Shown: in pieces, positions 17,366 through 57,400 of the stretch
Numbering within the stretch: position 1 is the first letter of the stretch
Layout of the letters: every line of letters starts with the position of its first letter
From: Cyanophora paradoxa CCMP329
Taxonomy: Eukaryota; Plantae; Glaucophyta
Reading direction: 5' to 3'
NCBI GenBank assembly: GCA_004431415.1
Contig: QPMI01000104.1
Coordinates: 186,001 to 250,000, forward strand
DNA: 64,000 nt
Notes under the pieces: model-generated
The model's database searches: none
What the model saw: only the letters and a program-made list of their open reading frames with translations
What the model was told of the DNA's origin: nothing
Program-made: the position numbers and the translations under genes

Positions 17366-17980
17366 ATAAATAGAAACAGATCATAAATAAATTCAAGCAG
17401 CTTAACATTTCCGCATTTTTGTTTTGTTTCTTTGGATGCTAGCTTCTTTGAAATTCGCGCAGTTAGTGATTAGCCTAGTATGCTGTCCACAAGACTGCGG
17501 GCAATAGCTAGCTATATATAGAGCCTCGCCGAGGCATGCACGTGCAGCTTTGATATGTATGCACCCAGTTGTGGACTCGCCGAGTCGCAGGCGTGCAGCA
17601 TGCCATGATGCGCAGTGCATGCGTATGCGCATGCGCAGCCTTTTCGCTTCAATTTCGTTTTTTTCGTTTAGAAGTGCTAGGCGCTCTTGTGCAATTGAAC
17701 GCAGTTACCTTAAAAAATACAATTTGCAAAGCCGATCGCATCGATATTGCACCGTACGCGTGGCATGCCCCGGGTTCGGGGGGATCAGCTATATACAAGA
17801 TGCTGATCATGAGCGTATATACGTAATTCGAATTCCCCCTTCTCCCACCCCCTTTCCCCCTTAACCCGGCCCTTTTCACCACCCCCGTCACCCTTCGAAT
17901 TCCGGCCACCCCGCGACCCCTCCCCCTTCGAGAGCTCAAGCATAGACTTTCTAACCCCCCCCCCTCCCCCCCCCACCACC

Positions 17981-18358
17981 CACGTGCACACCCCCAGCCC
18001 TTCAGAATTCAGCTTCGAGTTCCCGACGCGGGCACCAATCATTTACAAGTGCAGGTATCGATTGGTAAGGCTTCGTTCCGATTGCGAGTAACCCGACTCG
18101 GCTGGGCGCCGGCGACGCCGCGACGGTCACCGCAGCTCCGAATCGAATCGACGCGCCGCGCGGGCGGCCCACGTGCACATCCCCGGCCCTTCAGAATTCA
18201 GCTTCGAGTTCCCGACGCGGGCACCAATCATTTACAAGTGCAGGTATCGATTGGTAAGGCTTCGTTCCGATTGCGAGTAACCCGACTCGGCTGGGCGCCG
18301 GCGACGCCGCGACGGTCACCGCAGCTCCGAATCGAATCGACGCGCCGCGCGGGCGGCC
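17981..18358 (+). repeat. 189-bp tandem duplication (2 copies)
   Basis: Units start at CACGTGCACA 17981 and 18170 and are near-identical. Confidence 0.9.
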
Positions 18359-37700: not shown

Positions 37701-38535
37701 CAAGGGCGGACCGGCGTCGGCGTCGGCGTCGGCTGCGGCTTCAGCCGAGCACGCCTCGCTCGACAAGGCGGCAGACCCCGCCGCCCACGCCCGGCGCATC
37801 CTCCTCAGGTCCTCGAACCCTTTTCCCCGACTCCGACGCGCGTCTCAGCGTATATTTCTGCAGCGTCGGCAAGCGGCAGTCGGAGGAGGAGGGCGTATGG
37901 GGGGTCCTGCAGCCCCCGAAGGGCTTCCACCTCCACACGACCTTCAAGCCGCTGGCCGCGGCGCTCCACCTCACCGCCTCGTGGGCGCCCGGCGCGCCGC
38001 CGGACGCCGGCTTCGCAGTACTGGTGCGGACGTCCTTCCTCCTTCCTTCTCCCTTCCAAACTCGTTCCTTCCTTATAATTACTCGGCGGCGCAGGGCCGC
38101 GTGGTTCGGTTCATGCCCTATTTGGAGGCGCTGACCCTCAAGGCCGGCGACGCCGGCGGCTCGGGCCACGGCTCCTCGGCCCCGCTGCTCGAGCTGCTGA
38201 GGCAGGCGCCGCGGCTGAGGCGCCTCTCCCTCCTGCTCCCGCTGAGCGACGCGGCGGCGGACGCGGTGCTGGGGGCGCTGCCCGACCTCTGCGGGGGCCT
38301 GGAGGCGTTCACGCTGACCGTGCCGCGGCTCGACGGGGCGATCGCGAGCGCGGCCGCTGCCTTCGCGAGGAGGTGCCCCCGCCTCTCGGCCGTCCACTTC
38401 CACACGTTCGGCGGCGATGGAGAGCCGGGGGCCGCGGCCGGCGGCGAGGCCCTTCGCCGCGCCCTCTTCTTTGTGGAGCGCGTCTCCGTGAGCGGCGTGC
38501 AGGGCTACGGCGAGATGTGTGGCGAGTGCGTTTAG
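34771..38535 (+). CDS. F-box protein with LRR-like repeats (multi-exon)
   Basis: N-terminal F-box-like ALVHVAPHLAVRQRALCRAVCRSWQHALAAPALWPSLDV. Recurrent L-x-x-L-x-L units (LQELEV, LERLSL, LRRLSL, LEALTL, CPRLSAVHF). Confidence 0.75.
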
Positions 38536-38576
38536 ATCGGTCGTTTATGGTTTTCAGAACTGATTTTGAAGGCGGC

Positions 38577-39222
38577 CGCGGGGGCGGGGGTTGGGGGGGT
38601 TGGGGGGTTGGGGGGTGGAAGGGTGGGGGGTGAAGTGGGGGTGGAAGAGGGGGGGGGAGGGGGAGGGGGGGGATGGGCGGGGGGCGCGCTGGGTGGCGGG
38701 GGAGTTCGAGAAGGGAGGCGGGGCTAGCTATAGCGCGGGGGCTTTCCTGCATTGGAAGGCGGCCGCGAGCGGGGATGGGGGGGAGGGGGGTGGGGGGAGG
38801 GGAGGAGGGAGGAAGGGAGGGAGAGAGGGGAGGGGAGCACGTGGGGGGTGGGGGGGCTCGAGGATGGGGCTGGGTAGCAGGAGAGTTCGAGAAGGGAGGC
38901 GGGGCTAGGGCGGGGGCCTTGCTGCATTGGATAAAAGTGTCTGGGAGGCGGGGGAGGGGACCCGGAGGCCTAGGGGGAGGGAGGGAGGGGGAGGGGGGGG
39001 AGGGGAGGAGCGGGGGAGAGGGAGGGGAATGGAGGGAGGGTGGAGAGGGGGTGGAGAGGGGGGGGGGGGAGCGGGTGGACCGTCGCACTGGGCGTTGAGC
39101 TGAGCATGGCGGGGATGGAGCTCGAGGGCTCGGAGGAGGTGACTATATGGAGGGGATGAAAGGAGAAGGGGAAGGAGGGGTGGGGAGGGTGGAGCAACGG
39201 TCGGGGAGGGAGAGGGAGGGGG
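38577..39222 (+). repeat. G-rich low-complexity tract (G-quadruplex-prone) with a short internal imperfect duplication
   Basis: Dense G3-G9 runs. GAGTTCGAGAAGGGAGGCGGGGCTAG occurs near 38702 and near 38883. Confidence 0.75.
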
Positions 39223-39316
39223 AATTATTGAATTCTCAATCTCTCCTCCGTCGAACTCTTCTCTCGATCGCGATGCTAGATATATATCGCGTAACCGATA
39301 TATCGATATATCGAAA

Positions 39317-40790
39317 ATGCGGTCCTCGTCGTTAGCTACAGCGCGGGCGGTCGCCGTCCTCCTCGCTTTCTGCGCCGTGGCGCAAGCGAGCTCCTGCAGT
39401 GCGCGGCGCGGCATCGACGTCCGCGCGCGGGCGCATGCCACTAAATTCTCTCCTCGGCTTCGAATTCGCAGTCGGACCCATCACGAGCTGTTCCTGCAGT
39501 GCGCATGCGTAACGCGGCATCAACGTCCGCTGGCGCGCGGGCGCATATGCATGGCACTGAGGTCTGTCCTCGGCCTCGCAGTCGGCCCCATCACGATAAC
39601 GAGCTCGTACTACGGCAACTCGCACGTGTTTCGCGCTGAGATCGTGAGCGCCGAGCGATCGGAAAACCCCGAAGACCTTGCGTTCAATGGTGCGTTCAAA
39701 ACCGCAAAATTTGCAGAAATTCGAACCGCCAACCGCCGCGCGCCGGCGCGCAGTACGGGTTCTGGAGCAGTACAAGGGCTGGGCGGTGCCTCGGAACGTC
39801 CTCGTGACGACGGCCTGCAATTCCGCGGCGTGTGGCGTGAACCTGGAGGTCCGGGCTCGCGATCGAGCTCTTCAGAATCAGTTTCGCGCGCTGATTGCTC
39901 AGCAAGTGATCATGACCGTGCTCACCAGGTCGGGAGAGAGTACGCGCTCTTCGCCTTTGAGCCGACAGGCGCCGAGGCGGGCAGCGCTAGCGCTGCGACG
40001 ACGACGTCGACGTCGACTCCGAGTTTCTCGGTCAACCTGTGCAGCTTCAACCTGCCGTTCGCGAACGTGTCGGACTGTGGGCTCGAATACCTGCGCTCCC
40101 GGTGTGAGATAAAGATTAACAATGATAATGCGTACTTGTATGCTCGTAAACGAGTTTCGCGCGCTTCTGCAGTTCGTTCTGCAACGGAACGGCGGCGGAG
40201 TGCGGCAGCTCGGCCAACTCGGAGGAGTGCACGGCGCCCAACTGCCCGAGCACTTGCGCGGTCCTCCCGTTTGCGAGCTGTGGCTTTGCCGACACCTGCA
40301 TGTGCGCTTTCGGGGCGAACACGGATTTTGACTGCATGATTCTCGCGATTGATCTATAGATTTCTTATTATATTATATTGCGCGCGAGCAGCACGGTCGC
40401 GCAGTGCCCGGAGGCGGTGGCGCAGGCCGAACCCCCCTGCACACCCCAAGAATCCGCCCTCGGCAGCGGGTGGAAGTGTGGCTGCAAGAGCAGCTTCTGC
40501 GGCGGGTGAGAATGAATTCTTCGAATTTAGAATTTCGGAATTCTGCCATGAATTAATCGTCCCGCTGATCATGACGGGGCGCGTTCTTCATGATCAGGTG
40601 CCGGGGCGAGTTCTACGGGCCGCCGCCGGCGCGGGAGCCGCTCTGCAGCGAAGCGTGGCTGGGGTGCCGGCTCGGGACGGGGGCGCGAGACCCCGACGCG
40701 GGCGAGGGCGGTGGCGAGGGCCCCAGAAATCGGGACTCCGGATCCCGGGAGGCCCCGCAGGCGCCGAGCGGAAAGACTTCGATGCCATGA
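39317..40790 (+). CDS. TIMP/NTR-like secreted protein + Cys-rich module, copy 1 (N-terminally extended variant)
   Basis: Signal MRSSSLATARAVAVLLAFCAVAQA, then SSCIGPITSCSCIGPITITSSYYGNSHVFRAEIV...VRVLEQYKGW...VTTACNSAACGVNLEVGREYALFA...FSVNLCSFN. The C-terminal module includes CPEA...KCGCKSSFCGGCRGEFY. Confidence 0.75.
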
Positions 40791-43700
40791 TGCAAACGTC
40801 GTGCGATCCGCGCGCCCGCCAGTGCTACTAGTCAAACAGAATAGGTCCGACGGTCTTGAAAGTCAAACTGGCCATGGTTAATTTGAAGCCCATGTCTTGA
40901 AGCCCCCGATCGACATGAGCTAGGATCATGATCGATATCATGATCATGAATTCGAAGCTGACTCGGTGAATCTCGGTGAAGCTGAAGTCTCCGGATCCTG
41001 ATTGAGGGGATGGAGGCCCCAGGATTATTGGAGGGAGGATCCGGAGCTCCGAGGCTCGTTCCTGATCGAGGGAACTCCGGGAGGGATGGAATATCTAGAC
41101 GGGGGAGTTTGGGAGGGGAGGGGGGGAGGGGAGGCAGGGTGGGGAGTCTCGATCTATTGTCGCGAATCATTTGAATCATAAGTAACTCCCTCCTGACTTT
41201 TCTCTCGACGTCGACTAGCTCCCACTCAGTGACTTTACTTTGCGCAGAGATCGCGTGGGGAACAGCTAGTGCTAGCTATATATAGCTATATATAGCTATA
41301 TATGTACACGTACGAGTAGAGTACTAGTCAGATCGAAAATGCGGTCCTCGTCGTTAGCTACAGCGCGGGCGGTCGCCGTCCTCCTCGCCTCCTGCGCTGT
41401 GGCGCAAGCGTGCTCCTGTAGTGCGCATGCGAGGCGCTCTAGCTAGCCCAGTAGCGCGTCGTCCGTGCGCGTCCATCTGAATTCTCTCCTCGGCCTCGCA
41501 GTCGGCCCCATCACAATCACGAGCTCGTACTACGGCGCCTCGCACGTGTTTCGCGCCGAGATCGTGAGCGCCGAGCGGTCGGAAAACCCGGGAGACCTTG
41601 CGTTCAATGGTGCGGGATCGCGCGGCCTTGGGCGCCCTGCCGCAAATTTTGCAGAAATTCAAAATGCCGGCGCCGCGCGCGCAGCACGGGTTCTGGAGCA
41701 GTACAAGGGCTGGGCGGCGCCTCGGAACGTCCTCGTGACGACGGCCAGCAATTCCGCGGCGTGCGGCGTGAATCTGGAGGTCCGGGTTGTTCAGAAATTC
41801 GCGCGCTGATTGCTCTAGATCTGCGAATAAGCGTGCTCACCAGGTCGGGAGAGAGTACGCGCTCTTCGCCTTTGAGCCGACAAGCGCCGAGCTCGAGGCG
41901 GGCGCCGCTAGCGCTGCGACGTCGACTCCGATGTTCTCGGTCAACCTGTGCAGCTTCAACCTGCCGTTCGCTAGCGTGTCGGACTGCGGGCTCGAGTACC
42001 TGCGCTCCCGGTACGAGGCTCGTATCCAAAAAAAAATCGCACTCGGCCCTCGCGATCGTTTCTGATTATGAGCCTGCCTTTGAATTTCGTATACGCAGCT
42101 CGTTTTGCAACGGGACGGCGGCGGAGTGCGGCAGCTCGGCCAACTCAGAAGAGTGCACGGCACCCAACTGCCCGAGCACTTGCGCGGTCCTCCCGTTTGC
42201 GAGCTGTGGCTTTGCCGACACCTGCATGTGCGCTTTCGGGGCGAACACGGATTTTGACTGCATGATTCTCGCGATTGATCTATAGATTTCTTATTATATT
42301 ATATTGCGCGCGAGCAGCACGGTCGCGCAGTGCCCGGAGGCGGTGGCGCAGGCCGAACCCCCCTGCACACCCCAAGAATCCGCCCTCGGCAGCGGGTGGA
42401 GTGTGGCTGCAAGAGCAGCTTCTGCGGCGGGTGAGAATGAATTCTTCGAATTTAGAATTTCGGAATTCTGCCATGAATTAATCGTCCCGCTGATCATGAC
42501 GGGGCGCGTTCTTCATGATCAGGTGCCGGGGCGAGTTCTACGGGCCGCCGCCGGCGCGGGAGCCGCTCTGCAGCGAAGCGTGGCTGGGGTGCCGGCTCGG
42601 GACGGGGGCGCGAGACCCCGACGCGGGCGAGGGCGGTGGCGAGGGCCCCAGAAATCGGGACTCCGGATCCCGGGAGGCCCCGCAGGCGCCGAGCGGAAAG
42701 ACTTCGATGCCATGATGCAAACGTCGTGCGATCCGCGCGCCCGCCAGTGCTACTAGTCAAACAGAATAGGTCCGACGGTCTTGAAAGTCAAACTGGCCAT
42801 GGTTAATTTGAAGCCCATGTCTTGAAGCCCCCGATCGACATGAGCTAGGATCATGATCGATATCATGATCATGAATTCGAAGCTGACTCGGTGAATCTCG
42901 GTGAAGCTGAAGTCTCCGGATCCTGATTGAGGGGATGGAGGCCCCAGGATTATTGGAGGGAGGATCCGGAGCTCCGAGGCTCGTTCCTGATCGAGGGAAC
43001 TCCGGGAGGGATGGAATGTCTAGACGGGGGAGTTTGGGAGGGGAGGGGGGGAGGGGAGGCAGGGTGGGGAGTCTCGATCTATTGTCGCGAATCATTTGAA
43101 TCATAAGTAACTCCCTCCTGACTTTTCTCTCGACGTCGACTAGCTCCCACTCAGTGACTTTACTTTGCGCAGAGATCGCGTGGGGAACAGCTAGTGCTAG
43201 CTATATAGCTATATATAGCTATATATGTACACGTACGAGTAGAGTACTAGTCAGATCGAAAATGCGGTCCTCGTCGTTAGCTACAGCGCGGGCGGTCGCC
43301 GTCCTCCTCGCCTCCTGCGCCGTGGCGCAAGCGTGCTCCTGTAGTGCGCATGCGAGGCGCTCTAGCTAGCCCAGTAGCGCGCCGTCCGTGCGCGTCCATC
43401 TGAATTCTCTCCTCGGCCTCGCAGTCGGCCCCATCACAATCACGAGCTCGTACTACGGCGCCTCGCACGTGTTTCGCGCCGAGATCGTGAGCGCCGAGCG
43501 GTCGGAAAACCCGGGAGACCTTGCGTTCAATGGTGCGGGATCGCGCGGCCTTGGGCGCCCTGCCGCAAATTTTGCAGAAATTCAAAATGCCGGCGCCGCG
43601 CGCGCAGCACGGGTTCTGGAGCAGTACAAGGGCTGGGCGGCGCCTCGGAACGTCCTCGTGACGACGGCCAGCAATTCCGCGGCGTGCGGCGTGAATCTGG

Positions 43701-44110
43701 AGGTCCGGGTTGTTCAGAAATTCGCGCGCTGATTGCTCTAGATCTGCGAATAAGCGTGCTCACCAGGTCGGGAGAGAGTACGCGCTCTTCGCCTTTGAGC
43801 CGACAAGCGCCGAGCTCGAGGCGGGCGCCGCTAGCGCTGCGACGTCGACTCCGATGTTCTCGGTCAACCTGTGCAGCTTCAACCTGCCGTTCGCTAGCGT
43901 GTCGGACTGCGGGCTCGAGTACCTGCGCTCCCGGTACGAGGCTCGTATCCAAAAAAAAATCGCACTCGGCCCTCGCGATCGTTTCTGATTATGAGCCTGC
44001 CTTTGAATTTCGTATACGCAGCTCGTTTTGCAACGGGACGGCGGCGGAGTGCGGCAGCTCGGCCAACTCAGAAGAGTGCACGGCACCCAACTGCCCGAGC
44101 ACTTGCGCGG
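40237..44110 (+). repeat. ~1.92-kb near-perfect tandem segmental duplication (40237-42162 / 42163-44085, plus shared 25-bp junction)
   Basis: Duplicated ORFs in the track are offset by 1923-1926 bp. Only a few substitutions and small indels are visible. Confidence 0.92.
41339..42715 (+). CDS. TIMP/NTR-like protein copy 2 (chimera of copy-3 5' half and copy-1 3' half; 1-bp deletion at ~42400 frameshifts the C-terminal module)
   Basis: AQA|CSC N-terminus with an intact NTR-like exon set. TGGAGTGT here versus TGGAAGTGT in copy 1. Confidence 0.7.
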
Positions 44111-44639
44111 CCGTCCCGACTGCGAACTGCCTCGTAGAGGCCTGCGTGTGCGTTGACGTTTTTGCGGCGAACTCGAATTGTGACTGCGCGCGTGAGGTTT
44201 GATTTCGCACGCGCGCGTGCAGAGCGGCGCCAAAGTGCCCGGAGGCGGCGGCGCAGGCTGAACCCGCCTGCACGCCCGTACCAGCCCCGGGCGGCGAGCG
44301 GAAGTGCGGCTGCGAGAGCAACTACTGCGGCGGGTGAGATCGAGACGATAATTCGGATATTGATCACTTCTGCCGCTGACGTACACGTACGTCTACATTT
44401 TTGTTAGGTGCCGGGGCGAGTTCTACGGGCCGCCGCCGGCGCGGGAGCCGCTCTGCAGCGAAGCGTGGCTGGGGTGCCGGTTCGGGACGGGGGCGCGGGA
44501 CGCTGACGCGGGCGAGGGCGGGGGCGAGGACCGGCGCCCCGGATATGGTGATCCGACGCCGACGCTGCAGACGTCGACGCCGGGCGGAAAGACTTCAATG
44601 CAAAAGTCGTGCGATCCGCGCGCCCGCCAGTGCATCTAG
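43262..44639 (+). CDS. TIMP/NTR-like secreted protein + Cys-rich module, copy 3
   Basis: AVAQA|CSCIGPITITSSYYGASHVFRAEIV...EQYKGW...TTASNSAACGVNLEVGREYALFA...VNLCSFN. C-terminal ANCLVEAC...KCPEA...KCGCESNYCGGCRGEFY...SCDPRARQCI*. Confidence 0.78.
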
Positions 44640-45100
44640 CTATAGCTATATATAGTACGTCATGATCAAACTGAATTCGAAAATGTCTTGAAGTCACACC
44701 GGGGCGCGCCCATGCCAAGTCTTGAAGCCTCGAAAGCCCCCGATACGAACTCGGAAAGTACTAGTCGATGTCTGCATGAAAATAAAATAGCATAATGCTG
44801 AATCTTGAACGGAAGCGGAATCCGAAGCTGAATATTAATTCGAAGCCTCAATGTAAGTTATACGTGTACGCGTACGTACCTGATCATGACTCATGATCAT
44901 GATCAGTGATCCTTAAGCTTCGAGGCTCGGCGCGTCCTCTGCCCTAGGCCTAGGGCCTGACCATGATCATGATCATGAGTTATCCGGCTGGAGTCCATTT
45001 GGTCTACAAGCCTTCGTGGATGCCATCCTCTAGATCTGCCCTCCCAGCCTCTGTCTGTTCGATGCAATACCAAGGTTGTTTCTAATAAACAAGACTCGAA

Positions 45101-54400: not shown

Positions 54401-57400
54401 GCGAGTAGCAGTGCAGTGATTCAGTGACGCGCACGTCTTCGCTGGTCGCGGAGGGCGACTGGAAGACAATGCCCGCTGCGTAGAGTTCGAGTAAACGACA
54501 GAGTGAACAACAGAAGATGGGTATACGGAGAACGCACGCTGGCAGTTGCCGCCGATACAGAAGGCAACCGTCTTCCCCGCGGCAGCGTCGGCAGGCACTT
54601 CCGCCTAAATATGCGAATCAGCAACGGAGCGATCAGGCCTAGGACGCGCGCGCGCTAACCTGGACGACGTAGATGCCCGTCGGGAGGGTGCGGCTGATAT
54701 TCCAGATGAAATCTCCCGTGTTCTCGAGCAGGCGCCGGCCCGTGGACGTCCCGTTTGTTGTCTTTTGCGACAGCTTCACTGAGGGCGCGATTGTCTGCGA
54801 ATCGGAACGGCTCATGACTCGCAAAACAAAAGCAGATCAAGAGCCCGCAGGACGAACGCGGAGGACGGTGAGGTCGGGGAAGGAGAGGAGGGAGATGGTG
54901 GCCAAGGACTCTCCGGGGGCGGGGTTCGACGTGAAGATGGAGAGCTGGTAGATGTTGCCCTGGAACCAGTTCGAGTTGTACTGCGGGCCCGCCACGGTGA
55001 CAGCGTACGCTGCGCAGCGGCGCGGTGAGGCGCGAGTGGCGGGAACGCTGATTTCGTGGCGGCATGCGCACGGCGGATGAAGAACTCGGCCGAGTCAGCG
55101 GACGTGACGCCGGCGGCGGTGGCGCATTGGACGCGGAAGAAGTAGCGGCCGGGGGCGGCGTTGTCGGCCTTCCACGTGACGGAGCCGACCGTCGACGTCG
55201 TCGACGTCGTCAGCGTCTGCTGTTGCAAGTGAGAGGCGCATTGGAGAGAGGCCGCGGCTCGCGCCTGGAGGTTCGCTTGGGACGTGGCGGAAACGAGCGT
55301 GACGGTGACCTCCTGCTGCAGGGCGAGGCCGCGCGTCGCCCACGTGACGGGCAGCGAGTCGCCGAGGATGACCTCCGAGACCGCAGTGGGGGAGAGCAGC
55401 GTCACCCCCACGCTCAGCGAGTTGATCGCGTCCTCGACTGCGGACCGGACCGTCTGACACCGACAACGAAGCAGTTACCGCGAGTGCACATGTGTGAACG
55501 CACCGGACAGGACGCGGAAGGGATCGCTGAGGAGGACGAGAGGCCTGGTCACGGAGGGGCCCGTCAGCCGCACAGAGACCTGCACGCAGCCGAGGGCGCC
55601 ATCAGGAATGGGAAATTGGGAATGCAGAGGTTGAAAGAGCGCGCCTGGTAGAGCCCTGGGACCGCGGTCGCCGACACAGGGAAGGAAGCCGCGCCGTTAT
55701 TGAAGCCGAAATAAACGGACTGCCCGAATTTCAGGGACGGGAATCGTTTCGCGAAGAGGGGAAGGGGACGCGCCTGGGTGCGGGACCGGTCGACGGGGAA
55801 GGCGGTGACCTCGGCGGACGTGTAGGTCGCCGGGTTGGAGGCCCACGAGATGGAGTACGTGCCGCCGACAACGACCAGTGACGTCGAAGTCGGGTAGAGC
55901 ACCTGCGGCGGCAGCGACGCGGCCGTCGCGCCCGAGCCCGCTGGAAGCGTGGATTAATATGGCAAAGCACGTTATGTCCGTGCGAGGACGCACAGAGAGT
56001 CGGCAGAGGGTCGGGGCCCCAGCCGACGAGCGACGCGGTCCCGAGCGCGTAGAGGTTGCCAGCGTACACCGTCGACCCGACGCCCCACAGGAGCGGCGCG
56101 GCGGTGCGGGCGGGGAAGGCGGCCGCCGAGCCAACGGGCGCGACCTTGGACCAGACTTCCGCACCGACATCGTAGATGAAGAGCTCGCCAGCGACGACGG
56201 GCGACGCGGCGGCGCCGTAGCCGCCCGCCACGAACAGCTGCTCAAGGAGTTAGAGGCGGCCACTGACGGCGCTTGCAGGCGCGGGCGGTCGGACCCTGTC
56301 GCCGGCGTCGGAGGCATGCATGACGGCAAAGGCGCGGGCCGACGGCGCGCTCGCCGAAGTCATGTCCAGGAGCTGCGAGGTGCCGCTTTCGATCTCGATC
56401 TCGAGCCTGCGAGGCACGGTCGCATAAGACTCTGACGCATGCATGCAGAGCCCGAGATGAAACGCACAGGTCGCTGAAGAAGGCGGCGCCGCCAGTGCCG
56501 ACGCCGCCGAAGACGTACACGACGGTCCCCACGACGGCCGAGGCCGCGCCGTAGCGGCCCGGCACGAGGGGGCTCGGGTCCGAGCTCGCGTACCAGCTCG
56601 AAGACGCGATGTCGAAGAACCAGACGTCGGAGAGGGCGTTCCCGGCCGCGTCGGCACCGCCGTAGAGCAGCAGAGTCGCGTCGCCGACGGCGGCGAGCGT
56701 GGCGGCGCTGCGGGCCGGCGGCGCGAGGTCGGTGCTAGGCGTGACGACGCTCCACGCAGACGCCGTCGTCGAGTAGGCGAGGAGCGTGCTCGTCGCCGCG
56801 CCGTTGCTGAGGCCGCCAAAGGCTGCGAGCAGAGACGCCTCAAATCGCAGCGTAAATGCAATGAAAAACTGGACTAACCGTAGATGACGGGCTCCAGGCA
56901 CGCGAAGGCCGCTTGGGCAGCGCCGGTTGTGGAGGAGGGCCCATTCGTCCATGCGCCGCGGTTGAGGCTGAACGAGCGGACGCGGAGCGAGGCCGCGTCG
57001 ATCGCCGACGAGACGGCAAAGAGCGTCGCGCCGAAGGAGCACAGCGCGTCGTAGTGGCCGTCCGACGCCGCCACGCTCGTCCAGTAGCCGGCTGCAAAAG
57101 ACACGTCGCCTCGGCGCCGGGCGCTGAGGCGAGAGCGGCCGTACCAGGCTGTGCGCCGGGATTCGAGATCTCCTCCATGTCGACAAGGGCGAGACCCTGT
57201 ACCAGCGAGACAGACTGTGAGCCCGAGTCCACAGCTTCCGCCAGCGTCGACGCCGCCTTCGGGCAATGAATCAGAGAGCGGCGTTTTTGACTTCATGGGT
57301 GAGCCCGGCGAACCGTGCCGCTTGCGGGGCCTGACCCGAGGCTGGCAGTCAGGAGGCTCTGCCCGCCACTCTGCGCGAGGCGGCGCCGGGCCGTCGACAG

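Follow-up and report, generated by a model that had tools for sequence, protein, structure and literature searches.

Secreted TIMP-family proteins with a conserved Cys-rich module in a tandem array of the glaucophyte Cyanophora paradoxa and in bacteria

In a 64,000-nucleotide stretch of the genome of Cyanophora paradoxa CCMP329 (contig QPMI01000104.1, positions 186,001 to 250,000; here, the window), we found three direct repeats with a period of 1920-1926 bp (copies of about 1.92 kb), which together occupy exactly positions 39317-44639 of the plus strand. Each copy encodes a signal peptide, an NTR/TIMP-type domain, and a Cys-rich module. By sequence comparison and structure prediction, the first domain is a genuine TIMP-family domain of NTR fold. 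With two further paralogues on two other contigs, P0003 (56% identity) and P0004 (42%), C. paradoxa has a family of secreted TIMP-family proteins with at least five loci. We consider it fairly probable that this family consists of secreted TIMP-type proteins whose gene was acquired once and then duplicated, and which would inhibit metzincins through a wedge built around the N-terminal residue Cys1. The TIMP inhibitor family is not confined to animals: homologues in a glaucophyte and in many bacteria keep the N-terminal feature needed for TIMP inhibition. A sequence-only reading of this DNA had described a tandem array in an apparently non-animal eukaryote, with an A-x-A cleavage site and then C-S-C in copies 2 and 3, and with a set of TIMP/NTR and Cys-module motifs. 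All of these are present: the signal-like N-terminus of copies 2 and 3 ends in A-Q-A with C-S-C directly after it, and the motifs HVFRAEIV, YKG, TTASNSAACG, GREYALF, VNLCS, and KCGC.S.[YF]CGGCRGEF are in frame. The EukProt models identify the host as C. paradoxa.

Whole-domain analyses used P0002, the annotated protein of copy 2, in which the product of exons 1 to 4 is identical to that of copy 3; the spliced model of copy 3 was searched exon by exon, and its joined protein was translated only for the frame and the Cys count. The best Pfam match of P0002 residues 25-160 is TIMP (E value of 0.0028), with NTR second (0.27). As a single sequence, copy 2 stays under the TIMP threshold (see below). 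Paralogue P0003 passes the TIMP gathering score with 23.7 bits, and bacterial relatives reach 34 to 40 bits. Pfam and NCBIfam scans of the separate copy 3 exons gave no match, the exons being too short. The five best PDB sequence matches of the P0002 N-domain are TIMP-2 and TIMP-3, with C-S-C aligned on Cys1-Ser2-Cys3. A HMMER search collected 116 proteins at an E value of ≤1e-3, and in nearly all of them query residue 1 aligns to about target position 20 to 30. Pfam TIMP is matched by 67 of 117 scanned homologues (best E value, 7e-16) and NTR by 12 of 117 (E value of ≤0.01). When the profile of the 116 homologues was compared with the PDB, 15 of 15 matches at an E value of ≤0.01 were TIMP-1, -2, or -3; the best was TIMP-2 (9.2e-23), aligned from Cys1 through the SAxCG and LC[SD] cysteines. 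The cysteines equivalent to the C1/C70 and C3/C99 pairs, which the sequence-only reading had recognized, all four align with those of TIMP-2, and each is at least 90% conserved in the family.

Structure prediction points the same way. An AlphaFold2 model of the N-domain, built with the family alignment, has block means of the predicted local distance difference test (pLDDT) of about 88 or more at residues 1-90 and 101-120, 71 at residues 91-100, and 81 at residues 121-130. In the Foldseek comparison with PDB structures, a check that the sequence-only reading had suggested for its TIMP assignment, the top 19 listed matches are TIMP-1, -2, and -3 (E values of 7e-9 to 1e-5), with a TM-score of up to 0.78 on N-TIMP, a root mean square deviation of 2.2 to 3.6 Å, and about 20% identity. 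They are followed by the NTR domains of PCOLCE, agrin (NtA), and complement (C345C), at 7e-5 to 1e-3. A shape search of the ESM Atlas returned TIMP-4 and bacterial TIMP-annotated clusters, as well as TIMP-like folds in “hypothetical” clusters of Bacteroidota, Actinomycetota, Planctomycetota, and Acidobacteriota.

TIMPs bind the catalytic zinc via the alpha-amino group of the N-terminal residue (PMC9890683). The position of the CxC motif was examined in 102 homologues: its median is 25.5, and 91 of the 102 have it at positions 15 to 45. Ala occupies position -1 in 88 of them, and position -3 holds one of the residues Ala, Ser, Val, or Thr in 95. Ahead of the site, 97 have a hydrophobic core, and only 5 are lipobox-like. 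Residue 2 is Ser in 84 and Thr in 8, as in TIMPs. By these rules copies 2 and 3 fit the family pattern A-Q-A|C-S-C and copy 1 (S-S-C) does not, and Cys1 is the predicted mature N-terminus of copies 2 and 3.

The second domain is a Cys-rich module. Its bacterial form has 10 Cys in the pattern CC-x3-C-x-C...C-x3-PC...C...C-x-x-N-Y-C-G-G-C-x-A-E-[FW]-Y...C. Compared with this form, the Cyanophora module carries Pro-rich insertions and reshuffled cysteines: the K-G-C cysteine and one Cys of the C-C pair are missing, and an S-[DP]-C-G cysteine is gained. Scans of the exons gave no Pfam or NCBIfam match for the module, and its sole resemblance to the start of the TIMP C-domain, in a hidden Markov model alignment, is a weak and short C-x-x-[DI]-P-C stretch. 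The same two-domain layout occurs in dozens of bacterial proteins; the architecture, which the sequence-only reading had called unusual, is the norm for this family.

An alignment of all three copies shows near-identical blocks alternating with diverged, indel-rich blocks bounded by GT and AG, which gives seven exons per copy. The GC-rich context (0.56 to 0.72 around the array) and the introns mark a eukaryotic nuclear locus. EukProt (EP00741, Cyanophora paradoxa) has models for copy 1 (tig00000411_g559.t1, P0001) and copy 2 (tig00000411_g560.t1, P0002); no model of copy 3 was found among the protein-database matches. The features of the array are as follows.

39317-40790 (+): copy 1; EukProt tig00000411_g559, P0001, annotation N-truncated
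39317-39398, 39582-39689, 39754-39848, 39929-40101, 40173-40301, 40392-40505, 40598-40790 (+): copy 1 exons, plus an optional mini-exon at 39472-39498
39399-39498 (+): copy 1, internal duplication of 100 bp that takes in the end of intron 1 and the start of exon 2; repeat spacing 2022, versus 1920-1926 elsewhere
40791-40831 (+): conserved, out-of-frame tail of copy 1, reading S-C-D-P-R-A-R-Q-C in the frame of copy 3
40832-41338 (no strand): intergenic spacer/promoter region with TATA-like (TATATAGC)n; near-identical repeat at 42757-43261
41339-42756 (+): copy 2; EukProt tig00000411_g560, P0002; hybrid
41339-41420, 41502-41609, 41685-41779, 41844-42010, 42099-42227, 42318-42430, 42523-42756 (+): copy 2 exons
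42163-42187 (+): single recombination breakpoint inside copy 2 exon 5; informative sites match copy 3 upstream and copy 1 downstream
43262-44639 (+): copy 3, the only fully intact gene
43262-43343, 43425-43532, 43608-43702, 43767-43933, 44022-44147, 44223-44333, 44408-44639 (+): copy 3 exons
43262-43333 (+): predicted signal peptide of copy 3, 24 codons ending in A-Q-A, with positive n-region, hydrophobic core, and A-x-A site
43334-43933 (+): copy 3 N-domain (TIMP/NTR type), encoded from the end of exon 1 through exon 4; starts with C-S-C and has the SAACG and NLCS cysteines
44022-44639 (+): Cys-rich C-terminal module of copy 3, exons 5 to 7; C-E-S-N-Y-C-G-G|C-R-G-E-F-Y split by intron 6; aligns collinearly with the modules of P0003 and P0004 and of the bacterial proteins (10 Cys)

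Copy 3 is a clean open reading frame (ORF) of 306 codons with six GT-AG introns, and its mature chain has 282 residues with 22 Cys. The exon 3 acceptor is GCGCGCAG|[CT]ACGGG (43608 in copy 3), on which P0002 and P0003 agree; an acceptor at 43578 was rejected, as copy 1 differs there by 7 nt and the frame is broken. The intron 5 donor is most likely the canonical GTGCG[CT] (44148 in copy 3), because P0003 lacks the following 14 to 15 codons, the phase fits all three copies, and the count of mature Cys becomes even. The alternative donors GC (copy 3) and GA (copies 1 and 2) were rejected, since P0003 is without the segment and the upstream GTGCG[CT] is in phase. The annotated models end at an in-frame TAG just past exon 5. 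We regard exons 6 and 7 as part of the gene because they are collinear with the annotated paralogues P0003 and P0004 at 63 to 82% identity (exon 7, 63% to P0003 and 79 to 82% to P0004) and because intron 6 splits NYCGG|CRGEFY, a motif conserved in bacteria. AT-rich (TATATAGC)n-like repeats lie at 41270-41310 and 43195-43230, some 40 to 70 bp ahead of the start codons of copies 2 and 3; the two stretches differ by a 2-bp indel and are putative promoter elements. A different, (ATATCG)n-like stretch at 39275-39312 is a putative promoter element upstream of copy 1.

The three copies are not equivalent. In copy 1 the Cys1 codon is changed from TGC to AGC, so that the mature N-terminus would be S-S-C, and the reading frame runs on to a TGA stop at 40788-40790; its 100-bp duplication yields a possible 27-nt (9-codon) mini-exon, with which C-S-C would come to internal positions 9 to 11 behind the N-terminus SSCIGPITSCSC. 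Copies 1 and 2 have in common an 8-nt insertion near the end of exon 7 (near 40775 and 42700), which shifts the frame. Translation would therefore stop ten codons sooner and miss the final two Cys, although the nucleotides downstream are still conserved. Copy 2 has lost 1 nt at 42400 (AA to A), which puts exon 6 out of frame; this homopolymer deletion could be a long-read assembly error.

At sites that differ between copies 1 and 3, copy 2 equals copy 3 up to 42162 and copy 1 from 42188, and the two intergenic spacers are almost identical. By these sequence comparisons, copy 2 arose recently as a hybrid, with its 5' part from copy 3 and its 3' part from copy 1, through one unequal crossover: a single switch in exon 5 together with near-identical spacers is the expected reciprocal product, [1][3] giving [1][3-5'/1-3'][3]. 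The locus is a clean case of a tandem array arising from one such event. Although three repeats are indeed present, the array of three proposed by the sequence-only reading therefore comes down to two genes that have diverged (copies 1 and 3) and a hybrid of very recent origin. When copies 1 and 3 are compared, the ratio of nonsynonymous to synonymous substitution rates (dN/dS) is 0.36 in the N-domain and 0.59 in the Cys module, and the introns are only 48 to 69% identical; the N-domains of copies 2 and 3 are identical in protein. The dN/dS values indicate purifying to relaxed selection on the encoded proteins. With these values and the identical N-domains of copies 2 and 3, the description of the system as diversifying, given by the sequence-only reading, does not hold.

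Beyond Cyanophora, the nearest relatives are bacterial proteins from metagenome-assembled genomes (MAGs) of Myxococcota, Acidobacteriota, and Nitrospirota; one of them, MDX1503031.1 from a Thermoanaerobaculia MAG (P0005), carries a PF00965 annotation. The 21 loci found in species-representative genomes are mostly from Myxococcales/Polyangiaceae MAGs, with others from Nitrospirota, Desulfatitalea, and further groups. No further eukaryote appeared among the labelled matches, most matches being unlabelled metagenome proteins, and word-based searches using profiles A3 and A2 contributed only a few more sequences, none of them from another eukaryote. Bacterial contamination of the contig was rejected in view of the spliceosomal introns, the eukaryotic context, and the paralogues on two other contigs. 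A tree of 87 sequences groups the four Cyanophora proteins in a single clade with a long stem (99% support in the Shimodaira-Hasegawa-like approximate likelihood ratio test). Because these four sequences form one clade, a single acquisition by the alga, followed by duplication in Cyanophora, is supported; a probable bacterium-to-alga transfer is the economical reading of the taxon distribution. The sequence-only reading had raised horizontal gene transfer (HGT) as a question for phylogeny, to which the tree gives one Cyanophora clade without fixing its position among the bacterial clades. Longer bacterial members (P0005, P0008, and P0018) continue beyond the two core domains with Cys-rich repeats of pacifastin-like and VWC-like type, and one longer member has an antistasin domain there; these look like multi-headed inhibitors. 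Pfam PF27854 is annotated on the bacterial and metagenomic homologues P0129, P0130, P0131, P0136, P0138, and P0139. On the Thermoanaerobaculia contig (gene L001:8001-9062), genes for a tyrosinase and for an FAD-binding oxidase lie next to it on the downstream side.

The mechanism that we propose for the Cyanophora proteins is as follows. (i) The gene would have been acquired once, probably from a bacterium, and would then have gained introns and been duplicated. (ii) Signal peptidase would cut after A-Q-A and expose Cys1. As in TIMPs, Cys1 would use its free alpha-amino group and its carbonyl group to chelate the catalytic zinc of the target metzincin, with Ser2 pointing into the S1' pocket. 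(iii) The wedge would be held by two disulfides, Cys1-Cys(SAAC) and Cys3-Cys(NLC). Copy 3 and the N-domain of copy 2 would be competent for zinc chelation; copy 1, with Ser for Cys1, would not. The likely targets would be either metalloproteases that foreign organisms secrete (bacteria, fungi, or oomycetes) or proteases on the surface of the alga itself. That metzincins are inhibited is suggested by homology and by the conservation of the N-terminal wedge, and the fusion of some bacterial members to pacifastin/antistasin serine-protease-inhibitor domains lends circumstantial support, as does the response of a secreted red-algal TIMP-domain protein to oomycete infection (PMC6928737; see below).

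Several results weigh against this mechanism. The single-sequence TIMP score of P0002 is 17.9 bits, under the cutoff of 23.1. In the alignments to TIMP-2, no Cys is found at the Cys13-equivalent position, as the sequence-only reading had noticed, and the Cys13-Cys124 disulfide known from vertebrate TIMPs is missing. The C-terminal module is not a recognizable TIMP C-domain; its model (pLDDT of 74, moderate) has no fold match (Foldseek E value of >4, VIA Z of 2.1). An ORF with HExxHxxGxxH lies near only 1 of the 21 bacterial loci, with no consistent metzincin neighbour, and Pfam scans found no protease gene among ten long ORFs of the window, the sole clear match being a Kelch-repeat ORF at 56245-57186 (-) (PF24681, 6e-19). 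For the non-animal members, inhibition is a matter of inference. As to origin, the tree does not place the Cyanophora clade among the bacterial clades, and the direction of transfer is read from the taxon distribution only. As to expression, the contigs from four runs that were guessed to be RNA are of low depth and confined to 44346-44800, where they cover the last exon and the 3' untranslated region of copy 3; these contigs contain no splice joints, and one of them contains intron 6 sequence. Their other matches are short (20-nt) and spurious. In one contig of run X1, an 8-nt insertion (CGGCCCGG) follows position 44699, downstream of copy 3; the other runs are without it, and it is possibly a strain polymorphism. 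The missing Cys13-Cys124 disulfide is also a feature of some invertebrate TIMPs and may not be strictly defining.

Alternatively, the proteins may be secreted NTR-fold modules for binding or adhesion, comparable to netrin, agrin NtA, PCOLCE, and the NTR-like domains of sFRP, rather than protease inhibitors, which we regard as rather unlikely. The NTR fold does serve non-inhibitory binding in PCOLCE, agrin NtA, and C345C of C3/C5, which appear lower in the Foldseek list, and an ESM feature search ranked agrin NtA clusters alongside TIMP clusters; the absence of a genomic link to a protease, at the 21 bacterial loci and among the ten ORFs of the window, would also suit such a role. However, CxC follows directly after the signal-peptide site in about 90% of the 102 homologues, with Ser or Thr at position 2, and the family profile retrieves only TIMPs from the PDB at E values of ≤0.01 and no other NTR proteins. 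The modules of PCOLCE, agrin, complement, and netrin have the same fold but weaker Foldseek scores, and the profile misses them. To our knowledge, non-inhibitory NTR modules are internal or C-terminal domains, which do not form the mature N-terminus and have no free Cys1.

A second alternative, which we hold to be improbable, is that the array is mostly decaying or silent DNA, a recent duplication with pseudogene copies, from which no function is exerted. The missing Cys1 and the internal duplication of copy 1, the frameshifting deletion of copy 2, the 8-nt insertion that costs both copies their last two Cys, and the lack of spliced RNA in the contigs of the four runs all fit decay. On the other hand, the reading frame of copy 3 is undisturbed and all six of its introns are canonical, exons are conserved far better than introns, dN/dS is 0.36, the contigs do cover the last exon and 3' untranslated region of copy 3, and the homopolymer deletion in copy 2 may lie in the assembly rather than in the gene. 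It is very improbable that the proteins are inhibitors or ligands of another target class, for example serine proteases or metal ions, in which the Cys-rich module would be the active part and the TIMP-like domain a scaffold: the 10-Cys module is conserved as much as the N-domain, and serine-protease-inhibitor domains of the pacifastin/antistasin type are added in some bacterial members, but the module has no recognizable fold or family, and the most conserved positions of the family are those of the N-terminal wedge (C1, C3, KG, T, and CG).

Inhibition through the Cys1 wedge can be set against known systems. Animal TIMPs (MEROPS I35, with TIMP-2 and TIMP-3 closest by sequence) and the Cyanophora proteins have in common a signal peptide followed by Cys1-Ser2-Cys3, the OB/NTR fold, the equivalents of the C1-C70 and C3-C99 cysteines, the S-A-x-C-G connector loop, and L-C-[SD]. 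The Cyanophora proteins differ in the lack of a Cys13 equivalent and in an identity of about 20%, and the hosts of the family are bacteria and a glaucophyte. Whereas animal TIMPs have a six-Cys C-domain with three disulfides, the bacterial and Cyanophora family has a different, 10-Cys module, expanded in Cyanophora. Closest outside Cyanophora are uncharacterised bacterial two-domain proteins (for example P0005 and those of Myxococcota/Polyangiaceae MAGs, L004-L022), which are 35 to 45% identical over both domains and have the same motifs; several of them pass the Pfam TIMP threshold, and some add pacifastin, VWC, or other domains. The bacterial genes are intronless and encode the K-G-C cysteine and the C-C pair, whereas the Cyanophora genes have introns and encode the S-[DP]-C-G cysteine and Pro-rich insertions.

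Two systems outside animals have been published. In the red alga Pyropia yezoensis, py03343.t1 is a secreted protein with a TIMP (PF00965) domain that is induced by oomycete infection; on the basis of transcript induction and in silico domain pairing, it was suggested to act outside the cell by inhibiting metalloproteases of the pathogen (PMC6928737). By its published description, it resembles the Cyanophora proteins in coming from an archaeplastid alga and in combining a signal peptide with a TIMP domain. Tim of Listeria monocytogenes is a TIMP-like lipoprotein of predicted fold, paired with the metzincin Mtz; it has the lipobox LTAC, its likeness to TIMPs is structural and not in sequence, and it is cleaved by the adjacent metzincin (PMC8235301). 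In contrast, the Cyanophora and bacterial family has signal peptidase I-type A-x-A|C sites and no adjacent metzincin.

Reviews present TIMPs as a metazoan family (PMC9409782 and PMC4860685), and the authors of a 2021 paper (PMC8235301) found nothing in the literature on bacterial proteins that resemble TIMPs in structure. Already known are the PF00965 tags of some bacterial homologues in databases and the one published red-algal TIMP-domain protein; what is new is the combination, in bacteria and one glaucophyte, of a TIMP N-domain with a conserved Cys module of another kind. If metzincins are inhibited by these proteins, the origin of the TIMP mechanism shifts outside animals, and an extracellular arms race between proteases and inhibitors in microbial communities, as well as compact new inhibitor scaffolds, would come into view. 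A bolder reading is tentative: the Cys1-wedge TIMP inhibitor may be an ancient, largely bacterial invention, a secreted two-domain family with many members in predatory Myxococcota, from which Cyanophora obtained a shield by HGT, animal TIMPs being an offshoot and the 10-Cys module a new fold. If this is true, the Cyanophora copy would be an extracellular shield against microbial metalloproteases, animal TIMPs would be one offshoot of a wider family and not a metazoan innovation, and the C..NYCGGCxAE module would represent a novel disulfide-rich fold that has a binding role of its own.

Two repetitive stretches were observed elsewhere in the window. Just upstream of copy 1, at 38300-39100, lies a low-complexity stretch that is G-rich on the plus strand; its minus strand has an ORF at 38309-39088 (259 amino acids, Pro/Ser-rich, of PPPSP type) and its plus strand a Gly-rich ORF, and the possible explanations are an extensin-like coding sequence and a simple repeat. 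At 17979-18358 there is a tandem repeat with a period of 189 and 2.0 copies at 98% matches.

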